64,000 nt of DNA from Hydrolagus colliei (taxonomy: Eukaryota), in the NCBI GenBank assembly GCA_035084275.1, contig CM068771.1, forward strand, positions 4,154,001 to 4,218,000, in the 5' to 3' direction. This document shows, piece by piece, positions 6,001 to 52,510 of the stretch. The notes beneath the pieces are model-generated. The model worked only from the letters and a program-made list of their open reading frames with translations, was not told the origin of the DNA and did not search any database. Each line of letters begins with the position of its first letter. The first letter of the stretch is position 1. Position numbers and translations under genes: made by a program.

Positions 6001-6615
6001 GTGTTTGACACAAAGGCTTCTCTCCCGATGCTGAAGATCATCTTATTTACAATTGTCAATGTGTCCGACATTAATGGTCTGGTTCTCACTCTAGTTACAG
6101 TCACTCTGGATCCTGACACAGCCCATCCCTGGCTCATCCTGTCTGAGGCCCTGACCAGTGTGAGACGCGGAGACACATGGCAGCCGCTCCCTGACACCCC
6201 AAAGAGGTTTAGTGTCTGTCACATTGTCCTGGGGTCTGAGGGCTTCACATCAGGGAGACATTACTGGGAGGTGCAGGTGGGGAACAAGACACAGTGCATT
6301 GTGGGATTGGCCAGAGAGTCTGTCAACAGGAAACAACCAATCACATGGTCACCAGAGGGCGGGGTCTGGGGGGTGGAGCTGGTGGGCGGGGCCTATGAGG
6401 CTCTGACGTCACCCCCCACCCCCCTGCCCCTGACAGTGAGACCCGGGAAGGTCGGAGTTCACCTGGACTATGAGGGGGGACAGGTGTCAGTTTACGACGC
6501 TGATCACATGTCTCATCTCCACACCTTCACCCAAACTTTCACTGGGAAACTCTATCCTCTCTTCTATGTCTGGTATGGTTCCGAGCCTCTGACAATCTGC
6601 CCAGTGACTGGTTAA
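35..6615 (+). CDS. Butyrophilin-like gene, copy A (signal-peptide exon lies upstream of the window)
   Basis: Exons with AG/GT boundaries and all phase-1 introns: IgV 35-382 (348 bp), IgC 587-862, TM 2271-2390 ([33 protein letters not shown]), 3142-3159 (DLEKTV), 4003-4029 (GWKRICRCA), B30.2/PRYSPRY 6095-6615 ([12 protein letters not shown]...GRHYWEV...LDYEGG...LTICP). Confidence 0.92.
915..1222 (-). mobile_element. Older copy of the same SINE in a BTNL intron (also 23138-23445 and 47233-47540)
   Basis: Degenerate head, core and tail on the minus strand. Confidence 0.7.
4297..4690 (-). mobile_element. L2-type LINE 3' end in a BTNL intron (also ~26520-26914 and ~50614-51008)
   Basis: [23 protein letters not shown]...IGGRAFS...FKASLKTLL with a (ttg)n tail. 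Similar fragments at ~1500-1740 and ~3340-3700. Confidence 0.75.
4700..5960. repeat. C/A-rich low-complexity minisatellite tract in the last BTNL intron (also ~26925-28140 and ~51020-51855)
   Basis: Almost no G on the + strand; ~26-bp sub-repeats such as ccctcacatcccacccctcacacaca in copy-specific numbers. Confidence 0.9.
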
Positions 6616-7460
6616 CGAGGAGGAAAACGCTGAGACATTGACTAGGTTCACAGGTTGGTGGAGTGGGGCTGGGATGGGGGGGGAGGGGGTTGAGTGGCCA
6701 CTTTAAGATGAGAGTTGGCTTTGGGTCAGTATCAATGGGGGGGGGGGGGGGCTTGTCCATCGCCTTGGCAACCAATCGATGACAACATGGGAGAGTGGCA
6801 AGAGGGCTCCATGTGTTGCGGTTGCTGGGAGGACTAACTGAGGTCCTCCTCATGGCTTTGCCCTCCCATCTCTCATTAAATGGTGAGGGGGGGGGGGGAG
6901 ATAGGGACTGAGCCCCCACCAGCCCTCACCACCCACCGTCTATTTGACTGTTGTAACCGCGAGGTTTGGATGGAGCCGAGTGTTTGATTCTGGGCTTTTC
7001 CCCCAGTTTTGAGCTGAGTCTGAGACAGGAATCAATTACAATGAAAACTTCATCACCAGCTGGTCTCTGGGCTTGTGCTGAGAGAATCTGAGCTTCCATC
7101 AGTGTGTGAGCTCACACGGTCTGAGACAGGGATATCGGCTGATATCTTCCTCTCCAGCAATGCCCAGTCTCACAGTCGGGGGCTGGGCTCAGAATCTCAC
7201 TGAAATCTCCCAAATCACTTTAGTGTCTATAAACAAGGTGACACATTCTACTCTAGCGTCAGCCTCGTCTCACTGTGTATAAACAATGTGTAATGTGTAT
7301 TTTCAGTGACTACTTTTATAATCTGTGTAACATTTCTCATTCACTGTAACAATCACTCAAGACCTTTAACCCTCATTAAATCAATGTCCCGTTGTCTAGT
7401 CAAGTTGATATTATTACAGAAAATATTGTCATTGATTTGCAAAATACAAGAGCAATTAAC

Positions 7461-7466
7461 AATAAA
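7461..7466 (+). terminator. Candidate BTNL poly(A) signal (also at 29628 and 53358)
   Basis: AATAAA followed by T/GT-rich sequence, about 850 bp after the stop codon. Confidence 0.45.
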
Positions 7467-7620
7467 TCATGTTATGTCATTATTTTATGCCCAATGATTA
7501 TACACACTCTACACACTCTCCTCCCCCTCCCTCTCCCACCCCCACCACCCCCGATACACTCAGACACTGATACACACACCACTGACCATCAACCCCTGAT
7601 ACAAGAACACCAACAAGTTA

Positions 7621-8056
7621 CAGGTAGACCCCACTTAACGTCGCCTCGGTTAACGTACTTTGGTTATTACATTGCTGATACATTGGAAACACACAAATAT
7701 CCCTCCCCGACCGTGGAGGATACGTTCCTGAACACCCCCCCCCCCCCCCCCCAAGTGATTAGTAAAACCGTGGTTGGCAAATACAAGGCCAACCGCGTGT
7801 CTGGTTGATGTAACTGGGTCATCGCACCAAACTCTAGTGTTAGTGTTGAAACCCATGGATGCGCAAAATTCACTGCCGCGGTTGGCAAAGGTTGTCGCAG
7901 AGAGGAAACCACGGATACGGAGTGGGCAGCGAGAGAGATAGTCAGTGAGTGAGTGAGCCAGGAAGGCAGTCGGAGTGAGTGTAATGGGTTTGGTTTTAGA
8001 AATTTTTGACGCAAAATGTCCAAAAGAACCTAAATCCAGTTTTAACATTCATTCTT
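7621..8056. mobile_element. Same MITE, right end deleted (unit 1)
   Basis: TA plus left TIR at 7619-7643; diverges from the unit-3 copy at 8057. Confidence 0.8.
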
Positions 8057-8918
8057 CCAGATGGGAGTGCAGATGGCTAATTTCCATCTGCACTTCCATC
8101 TTGAAACATCCGTTGATTTGCATAAATTTCACACATGTTCACATTGAAATAATAATAACTTCACATTAACTTACGTTCAACGTCAAGGTGTTTTGGACAA
8201 TTTTAATGAAGATTTGGCTGATTTCCAGCTGTGTCTAAAAACGTTCCCAAAATTTCAACAAATATTCAGAACGATTTGATCTGAATTTCCAGTTTATTAG
8301 AGCACTTTCCAGGAGTTTCAGCGAATTTTCAGCTGTTTTTCCAGCACTTTCTAGAAGTTACAGTAGTCATCAGTAGTGCCCAGCCCACTTTCATGTGAAC
8401 TTTTGGCTCATTTCCAGCTGCATATTTTTTAAATATGTGTTGATTTCCATCAATTTAGCACATTTCAATTCATTTTACAGTATATTCTGTGAAGCGCTTT
8501 GTTACGTCGATAAGACATGAAAAAGCGCTGTATCAAATGCAAGGATTATTATTATTATTTTTATATTAAACTTACATTCGACTTCAAGATGTTTGTTACC
8601 CATTTATATTACCCATTTCTGACGCATAATGAATATCTGTCTGATTTCCCAAAGTGTCTTAACACTTTCTCCAAGTTTCAACAAAAGTTCCAAGCAATTT
8701 CCCTCTTTTCCCCCCTTTCTCCCTTGACCCCACTTCCGTGACTGTTTGTCGGACGCTGCCGTGCGCAGTTTGGCTGCCACGTTTCGCCCACAAATATAGT
8801 CAATTCTCCTCTCCTTCATCCTACCCCAACCCCTCCCCCCCTTCTCTTGTCCCTACCTGACTGTACAGCGCATTGGGATGTCCTCTCAATGTGAAAGGCG
8901 CCACGTAAATGTAAGTTT

Positions 8919-8996
8919 TGATTGATTGATTGATTGTTTGATTGATTGATTGATTGATGGATCAATCAATCAATCAATCGAATGAATGAATGAATG
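8919..8996. repeat. (TGAT)n-GG-(ATCA)n-(GAAT)n compound microsatellite (also ~31084-31161 and ~55389-55470)
   Basis: Read directly from the sequence. Confidence 0.9.
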
Positions 8997-9004
8997 TCCA
9001 ATGG

Positions 9005-10134
9005 TTTCCAGAACTTTCTAGAAGCTTTAACACATTTTCAGCTGTTTTTCCATCACTTTCTAGAAGTTACAGTAGTCACCAGTAGTGCCCAGCCCACTTT
9101 CACATGAACTTTTGGCTCATTTTCAGCTGTACATTCTTAAAATATCTGCTGATTTCCATTAAGTTAGCACATTTCAATTCACTTTACAGTACATTCTGTG
9201 AAGCGCTTTGTGACGTCGATAAGATGTGAAAAAGCACCAGATCAAATGCAAGGATTATTATTATTATTTTCATATTAAGATAATAATTACAACTTCACGC
9301 AAACTTACATTCGACTTCAAGATGTTTTTGACATATTTACACATTTACATTGCACATAATGAATCTCTGGCTGATTTCCCAAAGTGTCTTAACTCTTTCC
9401 CCAGTATCAACAAAAGTTCCAAGCAATTTTATCTGAACGCCCGATGGTTTCCAGAACTCTCCGGAAGCTTTCGCACACATCCAGCACTTTCCAGAAGCTA
9501 CCGGCCGCGCCTGGTAATTTCGCATGAACCTCTGGCACGTGGCCAGCTGATCGTTCTGGAAGTTTAACCCGATTCCCGTTGATCCCGGACGTCTCCGCAC
9601 AATCACAACAACAACAACAATAATAATTCCACACGAATTCGCGGTTGATTCCGGCTGTTTTTCCCGCTAATTTTCAGCAGATTGCCAGCAGTTTGGAGGC
9701 ATTGTTTTTTTACTGAAGCTTGGGGCTGATTTTGAGGCGTTTGAGCCCCTTTTCCCTGTTGACCCCCACAGGTCTGAGCCCCTCCCCCAGGTCTGAGCCC
9801 CTCCCCCAGGTCTGAGCCCCTCCCCCAGGTCTGAGCCCCTCCCCCAGGTCTGAGCCCCTCCCCCAGGTCTGAGCCCCGCCCCCAGGTCTGAGCCCCGCCC
9901 CCAGGTCAGATCTCCCAGAGCTGGGAATGAAGTTCCTCTGATTTCCAGCTGTTTCTGGACTGGGTTCCTTCCTGAAGTCTCCACAACGTTCCACGCGCTC
10001 CGATTGGCGGCCGACCAGGAAGCGGCCCGGGGCGTCCTCTTTGTGACATCACCTTGACGCCCTCTCATTGGCCCCCCTCCACCCCCCCGAGGCCGCCAGG
10101 CCCCGCCCACAACCAAGAAACCAGCCTTTATATA
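9005..10134 (+). promoter_or_regulatory. HSP70 copy 1 promoter: HSE arrays, CCAAT boxes, GC box, TATA
   Basis: Perfect 4-unit HSE tTTCcaGAActTTCtaGAAg at 9005-9024; in-phase array 9449-9496; TTCTGGAA at 9554; proximal TTC-GAA-CTC-CAA-TTC at 9968-9992; ATTGG at ~10003 and ~10067; CCCCGCCC at ~10100; TATATA at 10129-10134. Confidence 0.88.
9771..9903. repeat. 19-bp minisatellite x7 in the HSP70 promoter (also 31936-32068 and 56245-56377)
   Basis: Unit ggtctgagcccctccccca, exactly 133 bp in all three copies. Confidence 0.95.
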
Positions 10135-10160
10135 CAGGGCGAGGAGTGAAGCCAGGCTCA

Positions 10161-10345
10161 GACACTGAGACAGACTGAGAGTCAGACTGACACTGAGACA
10201 GACTGACACTGAGACAGACTGACACTGAGACAGACTGACACTGAGACAGACTGACACTGAGACAGACTGACACTGAGACAGACTGACACTGAGACAGACT
10301 GACACTGAGACAGACTGAGAGTCAGACTGACACTGAGACAGACTG
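10161..10345. repeat. 16-bp VNTR in the HSP70 5' UTR (10 units here; 4 at 32322-32385; 13 at 56646-56877)
   Basis: Unit gacactgagacagact; copies 1 and 3 each also carry two 12-bp gagagtcagact variants. Confidence 0.95.
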
Positions 10346-10563
10346 ACACTGAGAGGGGCTGAGAGACTAAAAGCCTGAGAAACAAGAAGGGAGAGCGAGA
10401 GAAAGAAGAGAGAGAGCGAAGGACGGAGCTACAAGAAGAAGACATAAAGAGGAAAACACCTTCGCGGCGACTTCAGTCCAAGACTCACTGACATTGGGAC
10501 AGCGATTCGGAGCCAAAGGATCTAAGTCACGTACAGACGCGCTCACGTACAGACGGCAGGACA

Positions 10564-12468
10564 ATGGCCCCAGCGATTGGCATCGACCTGGGCACCACCT
10601 ACTCGTGTGTGGGTGTATTCCAGCACGGCAAGGTGGAGATCATCGCCAACGACCAGGGCAACCGCACCACACCCAGCTACGTGGCCTTCAACGACACCGA
10701 GAGGCTGATCGGCGAAGCCGCCAAGAACCAAGCGGCCCTCAACCCCCCCAACACCGTCTTTGATGCCAAGAGGCTGATCGGGAGGAAGTTCGATGACCCT
10801 GTGGTGCAGGCGGACATGAAGCACTGGCCTTTCCAGGTGGTGAGCCAGGGGGGCAAGCCCAAGGTGCAGGTTGAGTACAAGGGAGAGTCCAAGACGTTCA
10901 ACCCCGAAGAGATCTCGTCCATGGTTCTGACCAAGATGAAGGAGATCGCCGAGGCTTATCTGGGCTCCAGAGTCACCAACGCTGTCATCACGGTGCCCGC
11001 TTACTTCAACGACTCCCAGCGCCAGGCCACCAAAGACGCCGGGATGATCGCGGGGCTCAACGTCCTTCGCATCATTAATGAGCCCACGGCAGCCGCCATC
11101 GCCTACGGTCTGGACAAGAAGGGCCAGGGGGAGAAGAACGTCCTGATCTTTGACCTGGGTGGAGGCACCTTCGACGTGTCCATCCTCGCCATCGACGGCG
11201 GGATCTTTGAGGTCAAATCCACAGCCGGTGACACCCACCTGGGGGGCGAGGACTTTGACAGCCGTATGGTCGACCACTTCATCCAGGAGTTCAAGAGGAA
11301 AAACAAGAGGGACATCAGCCAGAACAAGAGAGCAGTCAGGAGGCTGAGGACAGCCTGCGAGAGAGCAAAGAGGACTCTGTCTTCAAGCACCCAAGCCAGC
11401 ATTGAGATCGACTCACTGTTTGAGGGAATTGACTTCTACACCTCCATCACCAGGGCACGGTTTGAGGAGCTCAATGGAGACCTGTTCAGAGGAACCCTGG
11501 AGCCAGTGGAGAAAGCGTTGACAGACGCCAAGCTGGACAAGTCTCAGATCCACGAAGTTGTCCTCGTCGGTGGCTCCACTCGCATCCCGAAGATCCAGAA
11601 GCTTCTACAGGATTTCTTCAACGGCCGAGAGCTGAACAAGAGCATCAACCCGGATGAGGCAGTGGCCTACGGGGCAGCTGTGCAAGCCGCCATCTTGATG
11701 GGCGACAAGTCTGAGAATGTGCAGGATCTGCTCCTGCTGGACGTGACTCCTCTGTCCCTGGGTCTGGAGACAGCGGGAGGCGTCATGACCTCCCTCATCA
11801 AGAGAAACTCAACCATACCCTCCAAACAGACCCAGGTCTTCACCACCTACTCCGACAACCAGTCCGGTGTCTTGGTGCAAGTCTACGAGGGCGAGAGAGC
11901 CATGACCAAGGACAACAACCTCCTGGGCAAGTTTGAGCTGAGTGGAATCCCCCCGGCTCCCCGCGGGGTCCCGCAGATCCAGGTTACCTTCGACATCGAT
12001 GCCAACGGCATCCTTAGTGTCTCGGCCGCTGACAAGAGCACTGGTAATGAGAACAAGATCACCATCACCAACGAGAAGGGCCGGCTGAGCAAGGAGGAGA
12101 TCGAGAGGATGGTGCAGGAGGCTGAGAGGTACAAGGCGGATGATGAGACGCAGCGGGAGAGGGTGATGGCCAAGAACAAGCTGGAGTCGTTCGTCTACAC
12201 AGCCAAATGTGCGATGGAGGACAAGAGCATGGAGGGCAAGGTGGGAGAGGAGGACAGGCGGCAGGTGCTGGACAAGTGCAAACAGGTCATCAACTGGCTG
12301 GATGGAAACCAGACAGCGGAGAAGGAAGAGTTTGAGCACCAGCTGAAGGAGCTGGAGAGGGTGTGCAGTCCTGTCATGGCCAGGCTGAGGCAGGGAGGGG
12401 CAGAGGGCGGTCAGCGATCAGGCAAGAGCTGCCCATCTACCGGCCCAACCGTGGAGGAAGTCGATTAA
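10564..12468 (+). CDS. hsp70: Intronless heat-inducible HSP70 (HSPA1-like), full length 634 aa ending in EEVD
   Basis: Signatures [22 protein letters not shown] and [14 protein letters not shown]; cytosolic C-terminus GPTVEEVD; no introns; HSE/CCAAT/TATA promoter. Confidence 0.98.
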
Positions 12469-12569
12469 ACGTCAGCCGATGGACTTCCTGCCCCTTTGGC
12501 TTTTCTGTACCTGCTCAGGTGTTAATCTTTCCCACCTTCAGACACTTTGGGATATATGTATAAATGATA

Positions 12570-12695
12570 AACGTATAGGGCTATGGGTTAAGAGTAAGGG
12601 TGTGGGACTGATTGGGTAGATCTTTCAAACAGCCAGCGCAGATACAATGGGCCTAATGGTCTACTTATTTGCGGTAAGATTGAATGATTCTATGT
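12570..12695 (+). mobile_element. CR1 3'-terminal fragment downstream of HSP70 (also ~34611-34736 and ~59103-59228)
   Basis: gggctatggg...gatacaatgggcctaatgg...gattctatg resembles a CR1 3' end. Confidence 0.65.
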
Positions 12696-12790
12696 ATATT
12701 TTGAACTAATGATCTGCTATGAATGTATGTCACAGTGACAGCAGCTGGACTCTGAATTTTATTTTATTAAACTGTTTGTACCCGATGTAC

Positions 12791-12821
<31 letters not shown>

Positions 12822-12824
12822 AGA

Positions 12825-13070
12825 TTCATACTGGCTCAAACACTGGGGCCCTCAACTCTGAGTCAGAAGGTTGTGGGTGGAAGCCACACACTGGGCCGTG
12901 GAACCACAGTCTACCATGACACTTGAATGCAGGCGCTGGGTGGGGAGGGGGAGGGGGAGGGTGGAGGGTTTGCGACATCGTCAGAACTGGCATCCTTCAA
13001 ACAAAACATTAAAGTGAGCTCCTGTCAGCGCAGTGTTTCACAAACAGTTGTGGATTTCGTGAGCAAATGT
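12825..13070 (+). mobile_element. Degenerate Deu-type SINE remnant (also ~34860-35130 and ~59360-59630)
   Basis: ctctgagtcagaaggttgtgggtggaagcc head similar to the 40750 SINE. Confidence 0.55.
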
Positions 13071-13789
13071 TATTATTGTTAAGGGATTGTGACCCCAGTA
13101 AAGTGATCGGAAATCGCCCTAGAACTGTGGTCCTTTTCCCTGCAGGATAAACAGAGGCGTGTGGAATGGCGGTGTTGATGGGGAAACTTCACCCTATTAT
13201 TCACAGTAAAACATCAATAATAATCCTGACGTTTGAGAAGCGCCTTTCGTGTCAGGTGGACATCTCAAAGAGCTTCACAGGTTACACCATAAACATAAGA
13301 GCTGAGAACTTCCAGAACATGATTAAACAGTAAAATTCACATCAGTATTATTGCTAACACACCTGGACCCGAGTAAATTTACCTTTCCCTCGTGTCTCCC
13401 GATGTAGGTAAGTTAGAGGGCGATATCAGAAACAGAATCATTTACTGAGGGTTAAATTGACCGGCTGGGTGGATACAATGGACGCCGGTTAAATCGGACA
13501 CGAAAGAGCCGAGCATTTAATCTGAAATAAGCAGCTTCTGAGGCTGACCGCTATCGATGTATTAAATCTCATCCTTTGTTTTAACCCAATTACTGACAAC
13601 ATAGTAACGCCAATTACTACAACATATAGCGCCTCTGACGTCAGGAGGAAGTCCCGAGGCACTGTCACCAATTGCTGATGTGTAAAGCCCTGAACACAAT
13701 GCTCACTGTCATTTACAAACTAAGAAGGTGATTGATATCTTGATAAATAGTGTTCACAGAAAACGGGTAAAAAAAGAAGTGACAGAAAC

Positions 13790-15319
13790 TTAAACTTTTT
13801 TATTGAAAAGTTCTCTCAAGTCGGACTGTACGAGATCAGCGTGGCGTCGCTCTCTGATGCTCGCAACGATGTCGTTAAGTGCGTTCGAAAACTTGTTGTA
13901 GAGTCCGCTCTTTAGTAAGAAGCGTTCAGCCTCTCGCAGGCCAGTCAGAGCTGTGCTGGCTGTCACAGGCGAGGCCCCATTGTCCTCAGAGTCGCTGTCG
14001 CTGCTGTTCTCGACTAGTAGGCGCTCGGCGGCAACAGCTTCGGCCACGATATTCTCCTGACCTTGCGGATCACGGCAAGGTAGATCAGAGTCAATGTCCA
14101 GGAACTGGTCAGCGATCTGCCTCTCGCCCTCGGCCTCTGTGCTTGTCTTCTCGTCAGCCTCAGCACGGGGAGCAGCGTCACCAGACGCAAACCCTGCCTT
14201 TGCGAAGCAATTGGATATCATCGCAGGCTCCATGCTCTCCCAGGCCCTGGCAGCCATGCCGATGGCATCCAGCAGGCTGATGTGTCTGGCCATCTTTCCC
14301 ACCGAGGCCTGGGGGATGATGGTGTTGCTGTCAATGGCGTCGAGGAGGCGATTCCGTAGCTCCTCGCGGTAGGAAAACTTCAGGTGTCGGATGATTCCTT
14401 GACCCATGGGTTGGATCATGGTGGTGTCCGGGGGAATCAGCTCCAGGCAGATGTTCTTAAGCATTGGGACGGTCAGATGACACGGTGCGCTGTCCATGAG
14501 AAGAAGAACTTTACGCCCCAGGTTGACCAGCTCTGTGTCCCACTGCACCAGCCACTCCTTAAATATCGTTCCTGTCATCCACGCCATTTTGTTGGCCTTA
14601 TAGGTGACAGGCAGAACGGCGCAGTCGACTCCCTGCATACAGCGAGGGCGCTGGCTCTTCCCGATGACCAGCAGTTTGCGCCGGTCGCAGCCGGTCATGT
14701 TGGCGCAGACCATCAGCGTGACACTGTCCGTCGCTCCCTTTACACCACTCGGCTCCGTCGGGTGCAAATACGAGCCGTTGGGCACCGCGCGAAAGCGCAG
14801 CCCCGTTTCCTCCGCGTTGTAGATGGCATCTGGGGCATAGGAAGAGAGCAGCACGGTGCGGGAGTTAGCGCCCTCTAGGCCAGCGCTCCTCAGCTCTCCG
14901 GGAAACAGCCTGTACACTATGTTGTTACGTGCCTTCCAGCGGCTAAACCAGCCGTCGGTCACGGTGAACCCCGGCTTCCCGAGCTCGTGCGCCAGGCTCT
15001 GCGCCTTGGCTTTGAGGATGGGCCCATTGAGCGGCTGCCCCTCGGTGGACGCCCTTTGGAACCACAGGAGGAGAGCGAGCTCCACCTGGGGATCTTTGCC
15101 TTTGCGATCCCTCTTCTTACGCAGACCCACGTCGCCCTCGGCCAAGGTGGCCGCTGTCCGGCGCAGCTTCGTCTCACTGGCGACGAGGTCACCCAGCGTC
15201 GACTTCTTGACCCCGAGCCTCCTGGCCAGTTCTCGCAGGGGAGTCCCCCGCGGCTCCAACTTGACCCTGTCTAACACTTCTATCTTCTCCAAAAGTGTCC
15301 GGGACATTTTCTTCGACAT
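13790..15319 (-). CDS. Tigger/pogo-derived (TIGD/CENP-B family) domesticated transposase, 509 aa, copy 1
   Basis: N-terminal HTH, CENP-B-type HTH (ALLLWF...GPILKAKA...GWFSRWKARNNI) and DDE_1-type domain (IYNAEETGL, LLLMDSAPCH, IQPMGQGII). Intact single-exon ORF; no flanking TIRs seen. Confidence 0.9.
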   Translation of the reverse strand: MSKKMSRTLLEKIEVLDRVKLEPRGTPLRELARRLGVKKSTLGDLVASETKLRRTAATLAEGDVGLRKKRDRKGKDPQVELALLLWFQRASTEGQPLNGPILKAKAQSLAHELGKPGFTVTDGWFSRWKARNNIVYRLFPGELRSAGLEGANSRTVLLSSYAPDAIYNAEETGLRFRAVPNGSYLHPTEPSGVKGATDSVTLMVCANMTGCDRRKLLVIGKSQRPRCMQGVDCAVLPVTYKANKMAWMTGTIFKEWLVQWDTELVNLGRKVLLLMDSAPCHLTVPMLKNICLELIPPDTTMIQPMGQGIIRHLKFSYREELRNRLLDAIDSNTIIPQASVGKMARHISLLDAIGMAARAWESMEPAMISNCFAKAGFASGDAAPRAEADEKTSTEAEGERQIADQFLDIDSDLPCRDPQGQENIVAEAVAAERLLVENSSDSDSEDNGASPVTASTALTGLREAERFLLKSGLYNKFSNALNDIVASIRERRHADLVQSDLRELFNKKV

Positions 15320-15439
15320 TATGGCTTCTTATGTGTTGAGAGGATGACACAAGTTTAACAATAGAAAATAATACTTCCGATGTCTCAAATGGCTTCACAG
15401 GTCTTTTTTTTTGGGGGGGGTGGGGTGGGGGGGCGGGAA

Positions 15440-15570
15440 GGGAGGAAATGTCTGGTTCATTTCCGTCCGCCGGGAAATGTCCGGGAAGTGTCTGGTTCCT
15501 TCCCGAAGCGGTCGATGTCCCGCCCCCTTTCCCCCCCTCCCGCTGGCTGCTGATTGGCCGCCCCCAGGGA
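15440..15570 (-). promoter_or_regulatory. CpG-rich TATA-less promoter of TIGD copy 1
   Basis: ETS-like ccgggaaat/ccgggaagtg motifs, GC box gtcccgcccc (15517-15526) and CCAAT (ATTGG 15553-15557), 120-250 bp 5' of the ATG. Confidence 0.55.
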
Positions 15571-16231
15571 GCTTCAGCGAGTGGCTTAATGGAACAGACC
15601 AGGTTTGAGGCAGGAGGAAACACACACACACTTTATCTGCCGTGTTAGTATTAGTGCCCAGTCCCTCTTCACAAGTACCACTTTACCCTCTTTTCCCCCT
15701 TTCTCCCCCGGCCCCGATTTGGCTGCCGCGTTTCGCCCACAAACGTACAGTCAATTCTCCTACCCTCCTTCATCCCACCCCGACCCCTCCCCATCACCCC
15801 TGCTCTTGTCCCTACCTGTCTGTACAGCTCCTCGGGACGTCCCCTCGACGCGAAAGGCGATATATAAACGTACGTTTTGATTGATTTAGTGGATGAAACG
15901 TGGCAGCCATTTGCACACGGCAGTGTCCCACAAACAGCCGTTGATTGGGTGACCCACAATCGAGTAACACGGGCATTCCTACTTACCGCTAGTTAAACAG
16001 AGGCATGCGAAGGTACTTCCCTGCCCAGGAATCGACTCTGGGTCCTCTCGCTCGAGAGGCGAGAGAGCTAACCACTGAACTGCAAGACTCCACAAACTCA
16101 ACGGTGCTCGATTGCCTTTGCAATCTGCACACCAACTGATTCACTGGGACTATTTAAGCTGTTGTTGGCTGAATGAGAATATTGGTCATGTATTGCAGAA
16201 TGCACAGCTTTGAATATACATCTTGAAATAC

Positions 16232-40380: not shown

Positions 40381-40749
40381 ACCTCGCTACATGAAATGCA
40401 CGGATTATATTATTATTCAAAGAGAGAAAGAGTGACTTTCAGAGGAGTCACGTTGAAGAGATTTGTGTAGGAAGAGCTGTTGCTTTGCAGACTCGACTGC
40501 ACCTGTCCTTTATATCCCGCTGGTGTGAGGCAGCAGTTCTGGGGACCTCAACTCTAACAGGTGCAGGTTAACAATCCTTTAAGTTATAGCCAATTACGTG
40601 ACACTGCCCACAAACCCTGAAAATAAATCTCAGTTGTCAATCAGTCAGATATGCAACCTCGACCTTGGGAATGTCTTCAGATTCAGAGGCACTGAGTAGG
40701 AGGGAAAGAAAGTTTCCCACAGGTGATAGAAGACAGCAGCATCACCTGG

Positions 40750-41165: not shown

Positions 41166-42349
41166 TCAGATTAAAATACGATTTCAGCTTCCACAAAGTG
41201 GTGCTACCTTTTTATGTAGTGACTGTATACGGGATGATTTCCGATTGACACACCACGTAGAATAGGCGCTAAAGCCTAGGTCTATGTCCATGCGTATTTT
41301 TTTTAAAGATAGGCATTCCCGTCCAGCATATAACTTTTTGTTGGGTTCTCAAAAGCTTTAATTTCTCAGAAGCTTGTAAATATGTTGTCATTGTTTGCTA
41401 GCATTACAGTCACACCTCTCAAAACTTGAGTCATTTTTACTTACGGTGATCAGATGAAAAGATGATTTTAACTCCAGAATTGGTGCTGCCCCTTGTGGCT
41501 GTTTACGGGATGATTTCCAAACGAGGATTTGAGTCTTGGCGCCTATGTTTATCCAATCACGAGTCACAGACTCGCCGCGTCATGGACTGGTCTATCGACG
41601 CGGTATGTTTTGGGGTAGACGCCGATTCTGGTGTGCGACTCGATAATTTTATATTAATACTAAATCATTCAAAGATGTGAGTTTATAATTTATACATAGT
41701 TTTGAAGAACTGATTGTTACTCAAATGTTCAATAAATTTACTTGGTATTTAAATTTGATAAAAAAATGCAATTCTCTACCCCGGAAAATGTGGACCTTTT
41801 ATAATTTGGGGGGGTGCGTACGCACCCGTCGCACCCCCCCAGCGTACGGCCTTGGTATATTGACTACAAACACTGACTACACACACACACACACACACTA
41901 CAGTGTGTGAAGTATACAGTAGTTTACGGTGTGTGAGTGTGTGTACGATCAGTGGATATACACAGTCACTGTGTGTCTAAATAAATGCAAACTAAGAATA
42001 AGAATAATCCTCGCATTTGATACAGCACCTCATTAGGTCTTTGAGACGTCTCAAAGCCAGAGTGTAACAGACTGTACATTTTGTGGGCGAAATGCTGTAG
42101 CCAACTGCGCACAGCAGCGTCCCCCCCAAAAGGTAGTGGATCGAGGGACCAAATTCTTATAGTTTTTTATTTTTTAAGGGATTATTACTCCCGAAAATGG
42201 CAACTCGCCAATCGACAGGTTTCTACTTGCTGCTAGGCATATAGAGGCTTGTTGAGTGAGGAAACTTGCCTCACTTTTCGCCCTGTGTGTGTACAGTCAG
42301 CGTATGACTGCCCCTGACTGTTTCTCTCTCTCGTGTCTTCTCCCCACAG

Positions 42350-42538
42350 CTGCCTCACTCCCTGCGCAGCCTCGACGAAGTCACATACGCAGAGATCAAC
42401 TGGACCCCGATGAGGAGACCCAGCCCACAGCCCAGGGCTCTGTGTGCACACACTGACTACATACACACTGACACACACACACTGACACACACACACACTG
42501 ACCCACACACACTGACACACACACACTACACTGACTGA
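42350..42538 (+). pseudogene. Orphan ITIM exon, unit 2 (ITIM kept, in-frame ITSM replaced by CA repeat)
   Basis: Same acceptor and LPHSLRSLDEVTYAEINW..., then HTDYIHTDTHTLTH...YTD and TGA at 42536-42538. AATAAA at 42992-42997. Confidence 0.55.
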
Positions 42539-42678
42539 GTACACACAATCTAAGTACACCAGCATCCAAACTGACACACATGTGGAAACACACACATTAG
42601 CATTCACACGCACATTGAAACACACACACACACACACACACTGACACACACACACTGACACTGACACACACACTGACA

Positions 42679-42950
42679 NNNNNNNNNNNNNNNNNNNNNN
42701 NNNNNNNNNNNNNNNNNNNNNNNNNNNNNNNNNNNNNNNNNNNNNNNNNNNNNNNNNNNNNNNNNNNNNNNNNNNNNNNNNNNNNNNNNNNNNNNNNNNN
42801 NNNNNNNNNNNNNNNNNNNNNNNNNNNNNNNNNNNNNNNNNNNNNNNNNNNNNNNNNNNNNNNNNNNNNNNNNNNNNNNNNNNNNNNNNNNNNNNNNNNN
42901 NNNNNNNNNNNNNNNNNNNNNNNNNNNNNNNNNNNNNNNNNNNNNNNNNN
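42679..42950. other. Assembly gap (N run)
   Basis: 272 N. Confidence 1.
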
Positions 42951-43705
42951 AATTTAATGTAATTTAATTAACAGTAATTTAAAAAATGAAAAATAAAATT
43001 TTAATTGAAAAAAACGTTTGGTGCAATGTATGAGCTCCTGTGGCTCAGTGATTAGAGCACTTGTCTTGCAAGGCTGGGGAGACCTGTGTTCGAATCCAGG
43101 CAGGTCAGGGCAAAACGTCAGGCAAGTTTCCTTACGCCACACGCCTAATAATAATCCCTCCAACAAAAAAAACACAACAATAAAGTTGGTCATTTCAATC
43201 CACGACTGTGTGTGGGGGGGACGCCGCTGTGCGCAATTGGCTGCCGCGTTTCGCCCACAAATATATGCAGTCACTTCACTTTACAGTGTAGTCTGTGAAG
43301 CGCTTTGGGACGTCGATAAGATGTGAAAAGCGCCGTATCAAATGCAAGGATTATTATTATATATATATGACCGAGTGAGACACCATTGTCCACGCAATTT
43401 AATAAATAATAATCCCTGTCTGACACACATACCTTCTCGTGTCTGGGGGACGTCTCAAAGCGCTTCACAGGATTCATCCCCCCTACCTCGTCTCTCCTCA
43501 CAGCAGTACTGCTGCTTCCGCTCTACTGGGTCTGGCCTCCTCCTTGTCCCCCCGAATCCTATGCTCTACCATCGGCAGCCGTGCTTTCCACCACTGTGCC
43601 CTGAAACTTTGGAGTTTGGAACTCCCTCCCTCAACCCCTTCACCTCAAACCCTCCTTTCCACCATCTTCAGGTGGCACCTGAGACCTTTCTCATTGACTT
43701 GAGCC

Positions 43706-44296
43706 ATACGGACATGGAGGTGCAGAGGGACTGAACGTCCAGTGTGAAAAGGAGACGTTCAGGACCGTGCAACTGGAAATTGTCGAAATGTCGGAGGGCG
43801 TCCGACGAGTCATGGATATAGTTGGGTAGGGATTGGACGAGGGGAGAAAAAATGTAGTCTAAATATGATGAAATGAATTCAGTGGGACAGGAGCAGGCTG
43901 AGACAACGGGTCTGCCAGGACAGTCCTGTTTAGGAATCTTGGGGAGAAAGTGTAGGCGGGCTGTGCGGGGTTGGGTGACTATGAGGTTGGACGCAGTAGG
44001 AGGAAGGTCACCAGCGGAGATGAGGTTATTAACTACCTCAGTGACGGAGGCTTGGTGTTGAGCTGTGGGGTCATGGTTGAGTGGAAGGTAGGCGGAGTTG
44101 TCGGAGAGCTGGCGTTTGGCCTCTGCCAGATACGGCTCCTTACGCCAGACAACGACAGCAGCACCCTGGTCAGCTGGTTTGATGATGAAATCAGGGTTGG
44201 CCCTGAGGGAGTGGAGTGCAGTGCGTTCAGAGGGAGAGAGGCTGTTGTTTGCTGTTGGACTGAAGGTGAGGCTCTGACCAGACTCAGACAACAATA
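43706..44296 (-). mobile_element. Penelope-like RT fragment (unit 2 copy)
   Basis: Same as 19610-20200. Confidence 0.85.
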
Positions 44297-44618
44297 TGTG
44301 AGGAGCTACCGTCAACACTCGCAGTGAACATCACAGGACTGTTGCCCACTCTATGATGTAGGGAATATTTGAACTGTTTGTGTGTGTTTTCATGTGATTC
44401 CCACAAACCAGGAAATCAGCAGGAAACCAAAACCAGAAATAGTCTCTGAACATTGCCATCTTGGGACACAAGTTCAATTCACTTCTAACAGTGAAGATTC
44501 TTCTCTTTCAGGACAAACCCAAACAGGTCAGTGTCAGAAATTGTTTCCTGAAATAAAATTAGACAGTGATATAAAAACAATCATACTTTTACATTATATC
44601 GCAGTTACAGGATTGACT

Positions 44619-44632
44619 GGTTTCACTTTCGC
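44619..44632. promoter_or_regulatory. ISRE / IRF element upstream of BTNL copy C
   Basis: Identical motif at the equivalent position. Confidence 0.6.
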
Positions 44633-45136
44633 ACCCTGTGATGTTGAGTTTAACTGTGAAATAAATGTTCTCCATTGTCAGGTTTGTGTAAATAGTAAAG
44701 CGGGAGCGGCTGCTGTGAGTTTATTCCCAGTTTGTTGTTTAAACGCTGAGAATTGGAGGCCAGTGAGGAGTGAGGGGAATGGGAGCCTCGTCTCTGACCT
44801 GCACCTTGTTGGGGGTGAATAAGGAGCAGCTCTGAGGAGAGGGAGGGGAGGAGCACATAGAGCAGTCACACACAACATGTTTCTTCCCCAAAACTACCTC
44901 ATGGAGACCCCCCAGTGTGGGGCTGGGGGGGGCCTCACTGTCACAGTTAAACTTCCCAAATCATTATTCCGACAGAGATGGCAGTTTGTTCTGCTGTGTG
45001 TGTGTAAATGTTGTAAGATCGCAGAATTATTCATTAGGTTTTTTATTTTGACCAATTATGTACAAACACAAATCTCTGTAATTATCTGATTTGCTGTTGC
45101 AACCAGATGTGATCTCAATGTGAAGGCCCGAAGAAG

Positions 45137-48100
45137 ATGATCTGGAAACGCTGTATTCAGGTCCTGTGGCTTGTGCTCCCCCTCTCTCTGGCTGGTAAGG
45201 AAACACGTTGAATCTGTTTGGTTTCTGCTGATGGTAAAGGGAGGACCTCTCCATTCTGGTTCGTGTCCATAGGAAAGTGTAAAAGTTCCAAATGACATTT
45301 GTGTCTATTTGCGGCCAGGGCTCACTATGTCTCCTCATCCTTCTTGATCTTCCCACGGCCACTAACATGGTTGACCACTTTATCCTTCTCCACTCCCTTT
45401 CCTCTCAGCTCCACGTTCGTGGCTCTGTCCTTTCCTGGTTCTGTTCTTACCTTTCCCATCGTCTCCACTTTGTTTCCACCAATGACTTCTCCTGTATCCC
45501 ACGCTCCATCACATGTGATGATATCCAGGGTTCTTTACCTGGTCCTACCCTTTTTAATATTTACATTCTCTCGCTTCCGGATGTGGGTGACAATCAACTC
45601 TGTCTCTCTGCCTATACCCCCAACTCCAGGAACAATGCTGTCCTGATAGATTGTCGGTCAGACAAGGCTTGGATGAGACCCAATTTCCTAACTATAAATG
45701 TACAAGACTAAGGCTCTCCATCACCATCCTTTCCTTCCATCAGCATCTCTGCACCCCGGGCACTGACGGCATCAATATTCGTGGATGTACTCTCCACCAC
45801 CAATACATAAGAACTTAAGTATTAGGCGCAGGACTAGGCCATTTGGCCCCTCAAGCCTGCCCCGCCATTCAATAATACCATGGCTGATCTTCAAATCTAA
45901 CTCCACCTATGCGCCTCATTTCCATATCCCATAATCCCTTTGTCCAAAGAAATCTATCAATTTCAGTCTTGAATATGCTAAAGGATTGAACATCTACAGT
46001 TTTTTGGGTTAGAAAATTCCATAAATTCACTAGCCTCTGAGTGCAGAAGTTTTCCCTCAACTCATTGTGAAAAGGCTGACACCTATTCTTAAGACTATAA
46101 CCCCAACCAGGATCACCAACCAGGGGAAACAGTCTCCCACTGTCTACTCTGTCATGGCCCTTAATAATCTTATAGGTTTCTTTCATGTCACCTCTCATTC
46201 TTCAAATGCAAGGATTATTATTATAGTTCAATTGCGGCTGCCAAAGGGAACTTCTACTTTATGTTAGTATGTCACTAACTTTCTGTTGATAGTTATTCTG
46301 AGACAATGTGACTGAAAATCCTAACTATTGTCGATTGTTTGTTACTGAACAGAGAGATTCACAGTCAATGTTCCCAGTCACCCTGCCCTAGCCATTGCTG
46401 GTTCAGATGTTGTCCTGGACTGTAAGTGTTCCACAAAGCTGCCATTAGAGGGTGTGGAGGTGAGATGGTTCAGGGTGAGATTCGACTCCCCTGTGCACTT
46501 ATTTAAAGAGGGACATCATCAACTGGATATACAGGATGAAGCCTATAGACACAGAACACAACTGTTTGAAGAGAAGTTTATCAATGGTGATGTGTCTCTC
46601 AGACTGGAAGATGTACGGGTGACAGATCATGGAGAGTACACATGTTTCGTCGAGTACGACGGATCGTATGAACAGGGAGTGATAGAGTTGAAAGTTATAG
46701 GTCAGTAATGTTTCCAATTCATTTTATTACATGTAATCTGTGTGTGCAAGAATTCACTCATCTTTAATAAGTTCAAAGTACAATAATTTCTATGAACAAG
46801 AATGTCCGTTTATTCAGAATGTTGTAGATGTGTTTTTGTTAAGTTACTGCACTGTAATGTCCCGGGTAAAATATTGTCTGATTCATGTCTCCTGTCTCTT
46901 CCAGGCCTTGGCAGTCAGCCTTGGATTCATGTTGATGGACAACACAATGGTGGTGTGATGCTATTGTGTGAATCCAGTGGATGGTTCCCAGCACCAGAGG
47001 TTCTGTGGTTTGATGATCAGGGAAACAAATTATCAACACTCAGTAACTGGACAGTCAAACAGGATTCTAAAGGTCTCTTCAGTGTTCAAAGCCAAATAGA
47101 AATAATCCATTCAACCAACAAGATCAAGTGTCTGATTCATAATTCAGAAAATGAACAAGAAGGAAAACTCCAAATCTTGGGTTGGTAAACACAGTAAATA
47201 TTAATGTTGGTCTGAAAAATATGATGTAGATTTATTATAATAACTCTTGCATTTGAAATAACACTTTTCACGTTTTCTATGCATCTCAAATTGCTTCACA
47301 GAATATACTGTAAAATATATTGGCTGTGTATACATGGGCGAAACGTGGCAGAAAGTTGCGCACAGCAGTGTCCCTCAAACAGCTGTGTATTAAAATAACC
47401 AATTATTATTGTGTCTTTTTGAGGGACTATTATTAGCTGTGCAGAGTAAGGAAACTTGCCCAAAGTTTCACCCCACCGGGAATCAAACTCACGTCTCGCG
47501 CTTGTCAGGGGAGTGCTCTAATCACTGAGCTACAGGACTCCATAAAGTATTGTACAGGACTTCACTTGATGTGTTGTACAACACATGAAGTGAATACATA
47601 TCGGTCTGGATGATACGGTCTATCTAATTTCATCCTTTCAAAATATGAAACTCGTAAGAATTAGGAGCAGGAGTAGGCCACTCGGTCGCTCGAGCCTGCC
47701 CCACCATTCAATAAGATCATGGCTGATCTATTCTAACTCCATCTACCCGCGTTATCCCCATATCCATTCATCATCTCCTTTATCTCTCTATTATCCCTCT
47801 CATCATCTTTAATAACAACTATTTACATTTGTAAATTGCCTTTCACATCGAGACAACGTCCCAATGTGGAAGATGCTATAAAACGTCAAAGATTTGGTCA
47901 TCAGCTGGGGGATAGGGTCAAGAAGGATGGAAGGCAGGTGGGTGGGAGTAGGTGGGTGACCGAATGTATGGTCAAAGTGGTGGGTGTTGAAGGTGAGAAG
48001 GGACAGCCCGAGGTGGAGGGACTGTGGATGGGGTTCCAAAAATACCTCCGTACTCCAGCCCACCCAACCTTCCTGTTAATTATTCAAGCTGCTTATTATG

Positions 48101-51100
48101 TTAGGAATGAATCAATACTGAATGTCAACGTGACTGAAGCTCTCCTGATTAGCTCCAGTCAGCGCCTTCACATCTCAGGTACTGGCAGCATCAACAACAA
48201 CAACAAATTACATTTATAGAGCGCCTTTCACGTCGGGAGGACGTCCCAAGGCGCTGAATGTACAACCTCCATGGTTGTACATTCCATATCAACAAACCAG
48301 TCAGGAACCTAGATGTCTTGTTCTATCCTCAACTGTCTTTCCTCCCCCACTTACAAGCCGTGACTCATTCTGCCTTCAATCACCTCCGCAACATTGCCCA
48401 ACTCCGCCACTAGGTCACCCCTCAGGCCGCTGAAACTGTATCCAATATGATACCAGGCTTCACTTTGATTGAAGCCTGTGGTAGCGACTGAGCTATTGTG
48501 TGTAATACAGTAACATGGGGGTAAATGTAGGCATTTAGTGTTTGATATCAGAATAGATGTTTGAATGTATATTTACATTTCTTGACAGATGAGTTCTTCC
48601 CCAAAGTGCCAGTGGGTTTGGTGGTCTCCTCACTGCTCTTAGGACTTGCCATAATAGTGCTGAGTGTTCTTGTCGTCTACAGTGTAAAACAGCACCGAGA
48701 GATCAAAGGTACGTTTCCGTCAGTAACATCCCTCAACTTAACACTGTGTTACTGTTTGTGTGAGAATATGCAAGTTCTATAAATCAATTGCTTTCTCCCT
48801 TCACTCAGTAACCACCTGGCCTGTTTCATGTCACTGCCCTATTCTTCCCCCCCATCAGCAAGTTAGGCTTTCAACCTATCTGTCCCCACTCTCTGGAACT
48901 CAATCCAACTGTCTTTTCGAATCAGTCTTTCCAAATCACTGCCACATCATCCCATTCTGAAAGATGCTCTATAAATGTCATTTTGTTGTTGTTGTTTAAT
49001 AGGCCCCCTCTCCCCACTCTCACTGACTCACTGGAGACAATAAAACAGCATCTTAGACTACCACAGCTTGGCTAAATTATTAATTATTGCAGTATTATCT
49101 CATCGCTCGCTCCTCTCTCCCTTCTCTCGTTGAACGCTCCACTCCACTCTTCTCTTATCACTCGCTCCACTCTCCCTTCTCCGCCTAAGGGTGCATCGCG
49201 CGAGGGCGGTGAACTCCCATATGCAGACCAGCCAGCCAGCGCATATACGCACGTTATTCAATAAAGTCACGCATTTTTTTCTTCGCGCATGTTTGAGTTC
49301 ACAATTGAGAAAGATGCGATCGACGAGTGCCTACTGTAACTGAGTTGAGCTTTATTCTGTGTAGTTTATCGCTTGTTATTGTTGTAAACAGGTAGTTTGA
49401 CCACTAAATAATACTGTATTCAATATTGGTTTCTAACAGTTTTGCTTTGTATCCTCCAGATCTTGAGAAGACAGTTGGTAAGTCATCAAAGTAAAATAAC
49501 AATCTCATATTATGATTACTCTCACTCACAAGGTTCACACAAATCAGACGTAAGGTGGTGTTACAACACTTCTGTTTGCCAACAAAAGGCAAAGTTGCTA
49601 CACTCTCCTGTCAACCTGGGGAAATGCTCATGGGGAGCCAAATCAAATTCAAGGATTATTATTGTGGTATAAGGTTAACTTGCAATTCTTTAGCGCTCTC
49701 CACGCAGGGTAGCATCTCAAAGCACTTAAGAATGGCGGAGCCTGACTGTGGTCTGGGGGGGAGGTTGGGCCGTAAGCATGTAGGAAAAGGAATGTTTTAA
49801 GGCAGGTCTTAAGGGGAGATGGGGAGAAAGGCAGAGGGATTGAAGGAGAGAATCCATTGTTTCGGGGGTCGGTCGCTGAATGTATAAAGGTGGAGAGGAG
49901 GGAAAGTTCGCTGGGAAGTTGACATGTATATGAGATACATGATAAGAGACTTGAAGGAGTATATGGATAGGGCAGAACAGCTGCTGTAAGAAAAGATTGC
50001 TTTAATAACTCTTGCAAACTAGATATTTCACATCATTAACTGTTCATTTTCTTCGCTTAGACAACAGTGGCTTGTCAATATACACACATTTCAGGGAGGG
50101 GGTGGGGTGGATAGAATGAGCAAGCTTGTCAGTAACACAGGGAGTGAGTCAATGATGGAGGGATGGAGGAAATGAAAGAAGAAGGTATTGAGAGAGAACA
50201 ACAACAATATTGCACTTATATAGCGCTTTTCACGTCGGGAGGACGTCCCAAAGCGTCTCCCAAAACAAGGGAGTGATTTTGGAGCTACATAAGGTTTGAT
50301 CACTTCTCTCTTGGTTCTAGGGTGGAAGAGGATTTGTAGGTGTGCAGGTAAGAGTCTAACTGCTAAAGGAACCTGACTCCCCCCCAACGACCCCGCCACA
50401 CACTCACATTCCCTCCCCACCCCCCACCCACCCCCCACACACATGGACTCAATCCCACCCACACACATACTCCCGATGAGGGTGGTGTGGGGGTATGTGA
50501 TGGTATCTCACACACCATCACATACCCCCACACCACTCACACACACTCACATCTCTCTCCCACACACACCATCAAATCCCCCCGACACACACATCACCTC
50601 ACACCACACCCCCCACACAACAACAAATATTACATTGATAGAGCGCCTTTCACATTGGGAAGATGTCCCAAGGCGCTGAACAGTCGGGTCAGGACCCGAG
50701 CAAGGGGGAGGGGCAAGGTGGGTGGGGGGAGGGGAGGGAGAGAGTTGGGAGGGCAGCTGAAGGCACTGACCAAGAGGAGAGTCTTGAGACTGGCCTTGAA
50801 GGAGGTGAAGGGGAAGTGAGGTGAAGGGACTATGGGATGGAGTTTCAGAGTGTGGGGGCAGAGGCTGAAAGCCCGGCCACCAATGGGAGGGCAGATCAAG
50901 CGGAGAACATGGAGCAGCCTGCAGCCTGGGGTGGGCAGGTTGATAGGATGTCAGCCGGTCAGAGAGATAGGAGGGGGCAAGGTAGTGAAACGTCTTGAAA
51001 GTGAGGACAACCCCAAACACCCCCTCCCCACAATGCACATAACCTCACAAGCCTCCAACACAACTCTCCCTCCTCCCCCCGCCCCCCCCCCCCCCACACA

Positions 51101-52510
51101 CACACACCCACAAACACCCTGGCATTCCCTCCCAACACACGCCCTCACATCTTCCCTCTGGCCCCCCCACCCCCCACCGCCGCACACATCCTCACTTCCC
51201 CTCACCTCCACACACCCTCATGTCTCCCCCCACAACACACATAGTCACATCTCCCGCACACACCCTCAAACAACACTCCTCACACAAACCTCCACATAAC
51301 CCACAAACACCCTTACAGCTCTCCCCCACACACCTGCAAATTGCTCAGCCAAACACACCCTCATATTCCCCCCACCAAACACACTCACACCCGAACCCTA
51401 CACACCCTCAGTCACAACTCCCCCACCACACACATCCTTGCATTCCTCACCCACACATATCCCCCCATACACACCCTCATATCGCCTCCACACACGTCAA
51501 ACTCCACCCACTAAACCCTCACATAACCCTCACATCCCCCTCCACAAACACACCCTCATATTCCCCCTCCACACTGACACACCCCAGTCCACACACATTC
51601 CCCCCTCCTCCTCCCCCCCAACACACACCCTCACATCCCATCACACACTCATCCCCAACACACACATTTCCCACCCCCACACATGCTCATAATCCCCTCC
51701 AGACTTATATCATCCCCACACACCCTCACATCCCACCCCTCACACACACCCTCACATCCCACCCCTCACACACATGCACATCACCCCCTCTTCCTCTCCC
51801 CTCCACACACCCCCCCACATCACCCCCCCCCCCCCCCCCCCCCACACCCACAGACTCTGAGCCTATGTGTTGGATTCTGTTCCCAGGAGATGTCAGTGTT
51901 TGACACAAAGGCTTCTCTCCCGAAGCTGAAGATCATCTTATTGATAATTGTCAATGTGTCCGACATTAATGGTCTGGTTCTCACTCTAGTTACAGTCACT
52001 CTGGATCCTGACACAGCCCATCCCCGGCTCATCCTGTCTGAGGACCTGACCAGTGTGAGAGATGGAGACACATGGCAGCCGCTCCCTGACACCCCAAAGA
52101 GGTTTAGTAAAGATCCCATTGTCCTGGGGTCTGAGGGCTTCACATCAGGGAGACATTACTGGGAGGTGCAGGTGGGGAACAAGACACAGTGCATTGTGGG
52201 ATTGGCCAGAGAGTCTGTCAACAGGAAACAATGGATCACATGGTCACCAGAGGGCGGGGTCTGGGGGGTGGAGCTGTGGGGCGGGGCCTATGAGGCTCTG
52301 ACGTCACCCCGCACCCCCCTGCCCCTGACAGTGAGACCCGGGAAGGTCGGAGTTCACCTGGACTATGAGGGGGGACAGGTGTCAGTTTACGACGCTGATC
52401 ACATGTCTCATCTCCACACCTTCACCCAAACTTTCACTGAGAGACTCTATCCTCTCTTCTATCCCGGGTTTGATTCTGAGCCTCTGACAATCTGCCCAGT
52501 GACTGGTTAA
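45137..52510 (+). CDS. Butyrophilin-like gene, copy C (complete, 455 aa)
   Basis: Exons 45137-45194, 46353-46700, 46905-47180, 48589-48708, 49460-49477, 50321-50347, 51990-52510, with the same splice sites as copy B. Confidence 0.92.

Follow-up and report, generated by a model that had tools for sequence, protein, structure and literature searches.

Large tandem gene families whose B30.2 domain varies at its binding loops have been described among the NLR-B30.2 genes of zebrafish (Howe et al. 2016, PMC4852459) and the finTRIM genes of teleosts (van der Aa et al. 2009, PMC2657112); in both, part of the gene is homogenised, the single-exon B30.2 domain is variable at the TRIM21/TRIM5 loops, positive selection has been detected, and gene conversion has been proposed to shuffle the loop variants. 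Here we analysed a 64,000-nt stretch of the Hydrolagus colliei genome (GCA_035084275.1, contig CM068771.1, positions 4,154,001 to 4,218,000 of the forward strand; hereafter the window, with coordinates counted from its first nucleotide), which contains three butyrophilin genes in tandem. Like the NLR-B30.2 and finTRIM genes, these genes are tandem and multicopy, vary at the binding loops and have a mosaic B30.2 exon; however, NLR-B30.2 and finTRIM proteins are cytosolic, built on NACHT-LRR or RING-B-box modules, whereas the window genes encode predicted type I membrane proteins with immunoglobulin variable-type (IgV) and constant-type (IgC) domains and belong to the cartilaginous-fish lineage. 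The reading that we prefer, to which we assign a probability of about 0.6, is that the genes form an array undergoing concerted evolution, in which the B30.2 loops would be kept diverse by short-tract gene conversion combined with diversifying selection.

Human BTN3A1, BTN3A2 and BTN3A3 have the same order of IgV, IgC, transmembrane and B30.2 domains as the window genes, and their B30.2 domains are 46-47% identical to those of the window. The AlphaFold2 model of the window B30.2 domain (pLDDT 94) returned BTN3, BTN3A1 and then TRIM21 as its top Foldseek matches, with a TM-score of 0.95. The window proteins lack the RING, B-box and coiled-coil regions of TRIM21 and TRIM5alpha, and nothing in the data suggests that they bind Fc or capsid. 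Chicken BG proteins have coiled-coil tails and are not known to carry a B30.2 domain. The chicken BG clusters (PMC4046983) resemble the window in that they are butyrophilin-related tandem arrays near immune loci that expand and contract dynamically.

The best protein match of the window genes was a 'butyrophilin subfamily 1 member A1-like' protein of Callorhinchus milii (78% identity, E = 1.6e-216), and most of the other top matches were also named butyrophilin. Many paralogues were found in C. milii, whereas exact look-ups of the HSP70, pogo-like and full-length butyrophilin proteins found none of them in the protein collection. The C. milii butyrophilin cluster (MU249860.1, GCA_018977255.1) has the exon plan, domain order and hypervariable codons of the window, matches it at 77-87% nucleotide identity in the exons and parts of the introns, and likewise carries a pogo-like element downstream and a 5' gene part that is more homogeneous than the B30.2 block. 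In contrast to the window, the C. milii genes are located approximately 32 kb apart, are 4-20% diverged from each other, and differ in their ectodomains.

The window genes are genuine butyrophilins arranged in a tandem array (Table 1). All the features of the family are present: a signal peptide, IgV and IgC domains on their own phase-1 exons, one transmembrane segment, juxtamembrane micro-exons, which we located by a splice-site scan, and a B30.2 domain encoded by a single exon. AG/GT splice borders were present at all six exons of each copy, and the three open reading frames (ORFs) are intact, with no frameshift or stop codon in 3 x 1311 nt. The array extends beyond both ends of the window, which contains three units, each with a complete butyrophilin gene, an intronless HSP70 gene, a pogo-like ORF and various repeat fragments. 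A tblastn search of the window revealed no B30.2, IgV or IgC exons besides the three of each; hidden B30.2 pseudo-exons, considered as possible donors for conversion, were rejected on the same search, which returned the three B30.2 exons alone.

Table 1. Features of the window, in positions counted from its first nucleotide.
Feature	Position	Strand	Basis or remark
Tandem unit 1	1..22223	+	begins mid-unit, gene 1 leader exon lies outside the window; self-BLAST
Tandem unit 2	22224..46318	+	~24.1 kb
Tandem unit 3	46319..64000	+	cut off by the window end
Leader exon, gene 2	21042..21099; gene 3 leader 45137-45194	+	motif search, GTAAGG donor, C. milii leaders similar
IgV exon, gene 1, phase 1	35..382; copies 22258-22605, 46353-46700	+	Pfam V-set E = 1.8e-11, splice sites
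IgC exon, gene 1, phase 1	587..862; copies 22810-23085, 46905-47180	+	Pfam C2-set_3 (butyrophilin Ig-C) E = 2.1e-24
Transmembrane exon, gene 1	2271..2390; copies 24494-24613, 48589-48708	+	hydrophobic stretch, canonical splice sites
Juxtamembrane micro-exon 1, 18 nt, DLEKTV	3142..3159; copies 25365-25382, 49460-49477	+	AG/GTAAGT; C. milii DLEKRV
Juxtamembrane micro-exon 2, 27 nt, WKRICRCA	4003..4029; copies 26226-26252, 50321-50347	+	AG/GTAAGA; C. milii WKRIRSCA
C/A-rich low-complexity tract, last intron	4700..5950	+	GC skew -0.58; ~1.2 kb, length differs per unit
Divergent block, unit 1	5950..6880; equivalents ~28131-29046, ~51845-52776	+	intron end, B30.2 exon, ~260 nt past the stop codon
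B30.2 (PRY-SPRY) exon, gene 1, including stop codon	6095..6615	+	Pfam PRY 1.6e-24, SPRY 4.5e-21
B30.2 exon, gene 2	28276..28796	+	
B30.2 exon, gene 3	51990..52510	+	
HSP70, intronless	10564..12468; copies 32605-34458, 57097-58950	+	Pfam HSP70 E = 1e-260
pogo/Tigger-like DDE transposase ORF, 509 aa	13790..15319; copies 35836-37365, 60336-61865	-	Pfam DDE_1 2e-37, HTH_Tnp_Tc5 9.5e-15
Two assembly gaps, 151-nt island between	18068-18243 and 18395-18631	.	in (CACACTGA)n repeat, intergenic
Assembly gap, equivalent site of unit 2	42679..42950	.	intergenic, (CACACTGA)n microsatellite

Self-BLAST of the window showed that the units were 97.5-99.4% identical when gaps were counted (97.9% between positions 1-10230 and 22224-32395, and 97.5% between 1-5545 and 46319-51849), and the full 22-24 kb unit was 99.2-99.9% identical between copies. 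The IgV, IgC, transmembrane and micro-exons together span 789 nt; a three-way comparison of these exons showed that the IgC and transmembrane exons were identical in the three copies and that the sole variable site was a silent one (C/C/T) at position 90, corresponding to 46408 in copy 3. An earlier reading of the window, made from its sequence alone (hereafter the sequence-only reading), had reported exactly this difference and had proposed a diversifying array of intracellular ligand sensors behind one constant external interface. The count was exact, but a constancy specific to the ectodomain is not supported by the rest of the unit. In a three-way alignment, 24 of 4309 intron positions were variable (0.56%, against 0.13% for the ectodomain exons), and the 4.4 differences per 789 nt expected from the intron rate are compatible with the single one seen (Fisher P = 0.16, Poisson P = 0.07). 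Elsewhere in the unit, HSP70 and the pogo-like ORF included, each 250 nt contained 0-8 variable sites, mostly 0-1.6% per bin, rising to approximately 3-5% in the repeat-rich region at 8700-10200; furthermore, the ectodomains of the C. milii paralogues are not constant. Special purifying selection on the ectodomain is therefore rejected, the introns being equally invariant: the ectodomain is invariant because the whole 22-24 kb unit was duplicated or homogenised very recently. Non-coding DNA is as homogenised as coding DNA, which is the pattern by which concerted evolution is recognised, although very recent duplication and ongoing homogenisation look alike here. Human BTN3 ectodomains offer a parallel: a 2017 study, cited in PMC7348870, reported that they evolve in concert.

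The only hot spot of variation in the unit was a block of approximately 0.9 kb around the B30.2 exon. The 521-nt B30.2 exons had 33 variable nucleotides and 19 variable residues among 173 (13, 15 and 11 in the pairwise comparisons), and only two codons, 92 and 162, were changed solely synonymously. The counts of the sequence-only reading were reproduced exactly, as was every triplet of motifs that it had listed (RFSVCH/RFSVCA/RFSKDP and others), and its designation of the B30.2 exon as the variable part of the gene holds, although the hot spot reaches approximately 260 nt into non-coding DNA. Variable sites numbered 5 in the last 145 nt of the intron, 33 in the 521 nt of the exon, 20 in the 250 aligned nucleotides past the stop codon (in addition to indels), and 9 in the 1173 nt further 3'. 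Relative to the introns, both the B30.2 exon (P = 3e-18) and the 3' flank (P = 2e-14) were significantly enriched in variable sites, whereas the exon and the flank did not differ from each other (P = 0.45); no other 250-nt bin exceeded 8 variable sites. The upstream border of the block is the C/A-rich tract of the last intron, which has many indels between units. This tract on one side and the G-runs that follow the stop codon on the other bracket the B30.2 block, and the two may mark boundaries of exchange. The C. milii 3' flanks, to which we turned to polarise the patches in the 3' flank, were too diverged for reliable alignment.

The differences within the B30.2 exon were strongly clustered. 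We counted 13 pairs of adjacent variable sites, compared with 2.0 expected and with a maximum of 8 in 20,000 permutations (P < 5e-5). The patches alter up to seven of eight neighbouring bases, as in the change from GTC TGT CAC to AAA GAT CCC, and each copy has private patches. The AAA GAT CCC patch of copy 3, encoding KDP, matches the corresponding codons of the C. milii paralogue Cm_L003b at every nucleotide, and the silent GGT of copy 2 is linked to a TGG-CTG-TGG patch, as it is in Cm_L003b. Synonymous-site divergence in the B30.2 exon (0.019-0.031) was 6-10 times the intron level (0.003-0.005). At codon 18 (6148-6150 and its copies), copies 1 and 2 encode Ala in place of the Asp of an LSED motif, which is found in at least 90% of 116 aligned sequences; at codon 67 (6295-6297 and its copies), copies 1 and 3 encode Cys where at least 90% of those sequences have Trp; and R151 is common to copies 2 and 3. 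When the family serves as outgroup, D18 and W67 show all four gametes. The D18A and W67C changes could reflect altered function or relaxed constraint. Taken together, the clustering, the match to Cm_L003b, the old synonymous divergence and the four gametes suggest a templated exchange of short tracts of old sequence, and these features are at odds with new point mutations in a recently duplicated gene.

The variable residues were then compared with known ligand contacts. The pocket of BTN3A1 is lined by H351, H378, K393, R412, R418 and R469 (PMC4303140); W350, Y352 and W391 of BTN3A1 contribute ligand-binding and BTN2A1-docking contacts (PMC10533412); and TRIM21 contacts Fc through W299, W381, W383 and F450 (PMC4670481). 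We obtained the domain sequences of BTN3A1 and TRIM21 through PDB alignments, aligned them to the window domains by BLASTP, and transferred these published contact residues. W350, H351, Y352, W391 and R418 of BTN3A1 aligned with variable positions 40, 41, 42, 81 and 107, variable positions 66-67 and 158 adjoined H378 and R469, and the four TRIM21 contacts aligned with variable positions 12, 94, 96 and 160. Overall, 9 of the 14 mapped contact positions were variable (hypergeometric P = 5e-7). Across 113 homologues, the entropy was 2.35 bits at the 19 sites and 1.26 bits elsewhere (P = 1e-5), and the three most variable columns of the family were all among the 19. As placed by these alignments, the variable residues are on the canonical B30.2 binding surface, which bears out the location on pocket-lining segments that the sequence-only reading had proposed.

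The analogy of that reading with phosphoantigen sensing fared less well. The six basic pocket residues of BTN3A1, in the order given above, correspond to C/C/D, I, T, E, P/P/R and Y in copies 1/2/3; none of the six positions is conserved as basic across the copies, and the single Arg is confined to copy 3. W350, Y352 and W391 correspond to V/V/K, H/A/P and P/P/W, and thus vary here rather than being conserved. Since the basic phosphoantigen pocket of human BTN3A1 is not conserved in the window proteins, they should not be classified with phosphoantigen sensors of the BTN3A1 type. The pocket residue to which the functional differences among human BTN3A proteins map, residue 351, is equivalent to variable position 41 in the window. 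The W-L-W motif of TRIM21 recurs in copy 2, and TRIM21 D355 aligns with an Ile that is invariant among the window copies.

By the Nei-Gojobori method, the ratio of nonsynonymous to synonymous substitution rates (dN/dS, or omega) between the window B30.2 copies was 2.38, 2.07 and 1.42, which is not significantly greater than 1 (P = 0.09-0.37, with only 2.5-4 synonymous differences available). As an independent test, we used seven B30.2 exons from six C. milii loci (L001-L006, GCA_018977255.1) and a GY codon model, in which the 19 codons pre-specified from the window were separated from 150 framework codons. In the C. milii exons, omega reached 2.09 at the 19 codons, whereas the framework gave 0.63; a likelihood-ratio test for the 19 codons, uncorrected for recombination, returned P = 0.03 for the comparison with omega = 1 and P = 2e-4 for that with 0.63. 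In the close C. milii pairs, the proportion of nonsynonymous differences was 0.30-0.33 at the 19 codons, compared with a proportion of synonymous differences of 0.05-0.08 in the framework. At the same codons in independent paralogues, omega above 1 thus gives nominal support for a diversification of the family's loops by selection.

These data are consistent with the following mechanism. Unequal crossing-over and long-tract conversion, or recent duplication, would keep exons, introns and intergenic DNA near-identical, and the block of approximately 0.9 kb around the B30.2 exon would be a mosaic of short, old, multi-base patches at the hypervariable loops. The patches were most likely drawn from a pool of loop variants common to the members of the family; short-tract gene conversion would carry them between copies, and diversifying selection on binding by the cytoplasmic domain would retain them. 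The gene models, the homogeneity of the whole unit, the divergent block with its patches, the alignment with binding-surface positions and the raised omega of the C. milii codons are observed, whereas conversion as the mechanism, selection still acting on these particular copies, and any ligand-binding or signalling role of their B30.2 domains are inferred.

Several points weigh against this reading. The omega values of the window lack significance, and the C. milii value of P = 0.03 is nominal in a kind of test that recombination is able to inflate. Two changes at near-invariant residues, D18A and W67C, may represent relaxed constraint instead of selection. Part of the 3'-flank divergence adjoins G-run indels, where the alignment is uncertain. 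With only three copies visible and the donor of conversion not among them, the boundaries of the tracts cannot be set. Finally, the window copies are known from assembled sequence alone, with predicted genes and a predicted binding surface.

Some of these points would be explained if the window genes were relaxed young duplicates that neutrally receive patches from older, functional paralogues, in which case the bias towards the loops would derive from the donors and some of the copies might be decaying. The window omega values are not significantly different from 1, the near-invariant residues at codons 18 and 67 have been changed, and the linked HSP70 copies 2 and 3 have a common nonsense codon, so the array tolerates damage. 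However, every ORF and splice site of the three butyrophilin genes is intact and the framework codons are untouched; moreover, omega exceeds 1 at the same codons in C. milii, implying that selection has shaped at least the donor pool. We consider such a neutral mosaic unlikely, although it retains some weight.

The contrast between the homogeneous 5' part and the divergent B30.2 block could also have been produced by the assembly, either through consensus polishing that over-homogenised a collapsed repeat or through the misplacement of B30.2 exons from other paralogues. Arrays of 22-24 kb units that are more than 99% identical and are separated by microsatellite gaps of estimated length are indeed hard to assemble. 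Against this, all three B30.2 exons are in frame despite G- and C-runs, and the differences avoid the framework codons and occupy positions that are hypervariable throughout the family. Unit 2 contains approximately 2.9 kb of extra sequence (38975-41854) that is not present in units 1 and 3 and explains much of the difference in unit length; the units are therefore distinct copies, and they differ in repeat lengths as well. The same arrangement was also found in another species and assembly: the neighbouring C. milii loci L001 and L002 (MU249860.1, 726825-792758) are 95-96.6% identical from the promoter to the transmembrane exon, 79.6% identical in the B30.2 block and 84-88% identical downstream, a discontinuity like that of the window on an older time scale, which argues against an artefact peculiar to the window assembly. 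An origin of the pattern in assembly errors thus appears improbable.

A model developed from the sequence-only reading, in which point mutations under strong positive selection diversified the B30.2 domain while purifying selection fixed the ectodomain interface, accords with the 19 variable residues set against two silent codons, with omega values of 1.4-2.4 and with the location of the changes on the binding surface, but it is largely refuted by introns and intergenic DNA as invariant as the ectodomain exons and by a non-coding 3' flank as divergent as the B30.2 exon, and it is made very improbable by the other evidence, namely patches of up to seven changed bases in eight, one of them shared with a paralogue of another species, exon synonymous divergence 6-10 times that of the introns, C. 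milii ectodomains that differ, and dN/dS not significantly above 1.

The neighbouring features of the units were variously preserved. HSP70 copy 1 is intact, encoding 634 aa with a C-terminal EEVD, whereas the nonsense codon of copies 2 and 3 shortens the product to 617 aa, so that the EEVD co-chaperone motif is lost with the final 17 residues. The six C. milii loci analysed (L001-L006) contained no HSP70 gene beside their butyrophilin genes. The pogo-like ORF is intact in each unit, with six residues at which copies 2 and 3 depart from copy 1; its C. milii counterpart (L001 23680-25209, downstream of the butyrophilin gene) is frameshifted. SINE-like fragments (short interspersed elements) are repeated at approximately 16233-16588 and 18942-19272 and in the copies of these segments. 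A 220-aa open frame at 19575-20234 on the minus strand, between the gap and the gene 2 leader exon, resembles a fragment of a retroelement reverse transcriptase.

The runs of N lie in the interval that separates the pogo-like ORF from the following butyrophilin gene, whose leader exon begins 2.4 kb (gene 2) or 2.2 kb (gene 3) downstream of the gap ends. The possibility that the gaps lie inside the butyrophilin genes was rejected, as all three are intergenic, within the microsatellite, and cross no exon or intron. The flanks of the gaps, to which this comparison was confined, are colinear between units: a stretch of 223 nt just ahead of the gap is 100% identical, and homology resumes beyond it. 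At 17916-18067 and approximately 42350-42480 on the plus strand, a good splice acceptor is followed by the open frame LPHSLRSLDEVTYAEINW...TEYSSI, which contains tyrosine motifs like an immunoreceptor tyrosine-based inhibitory motif and an immunoreceptor tyrosine-based switch motif, as in the tails of inhibitory immune receptors. This frame extends into the (CACACTGA)n repeat with its assembly gaps, and no exons upstream of it were identified.

With concerted evolution and short-tract conversion as the preferred explanation, the window is a clean natural case of concerted evolution with one short block that escapes homogenisation. Judged by its alignments, the family would join the B30.2 multigene families whose binding loops have diversified, in this case on a butyrophilin scaffold of a holocephalan. 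A bolder and doubtful extension is that holocephalans have germline-diversified membrane butyrophilins, in which many alternative cytoplasmic B30.2 sites, directed at pathogen- or stress-related ligands and not at phosphoantigens, report to lymphocytes through one shared ectodomain and are exchanged by cassette-like conversion of exons; if so, they would represent an ancient, multi-specificity version of BTN3A1 'inside-out' signalling. If the pattern holds throughout the array, diversification of B30.2 loops would not be limited to cytosolic scaffolds such as TRIM5alpha, finTRIM and NLR-B30.2, but would have occurred on a cell-surface butyrophilin in one of the oldest lineages of jawed vertebrates, and the array would provide a system in which to ask whether intracellular sensing by butyrophilins predates, and exceeds, the sensing of phosphoantigens.

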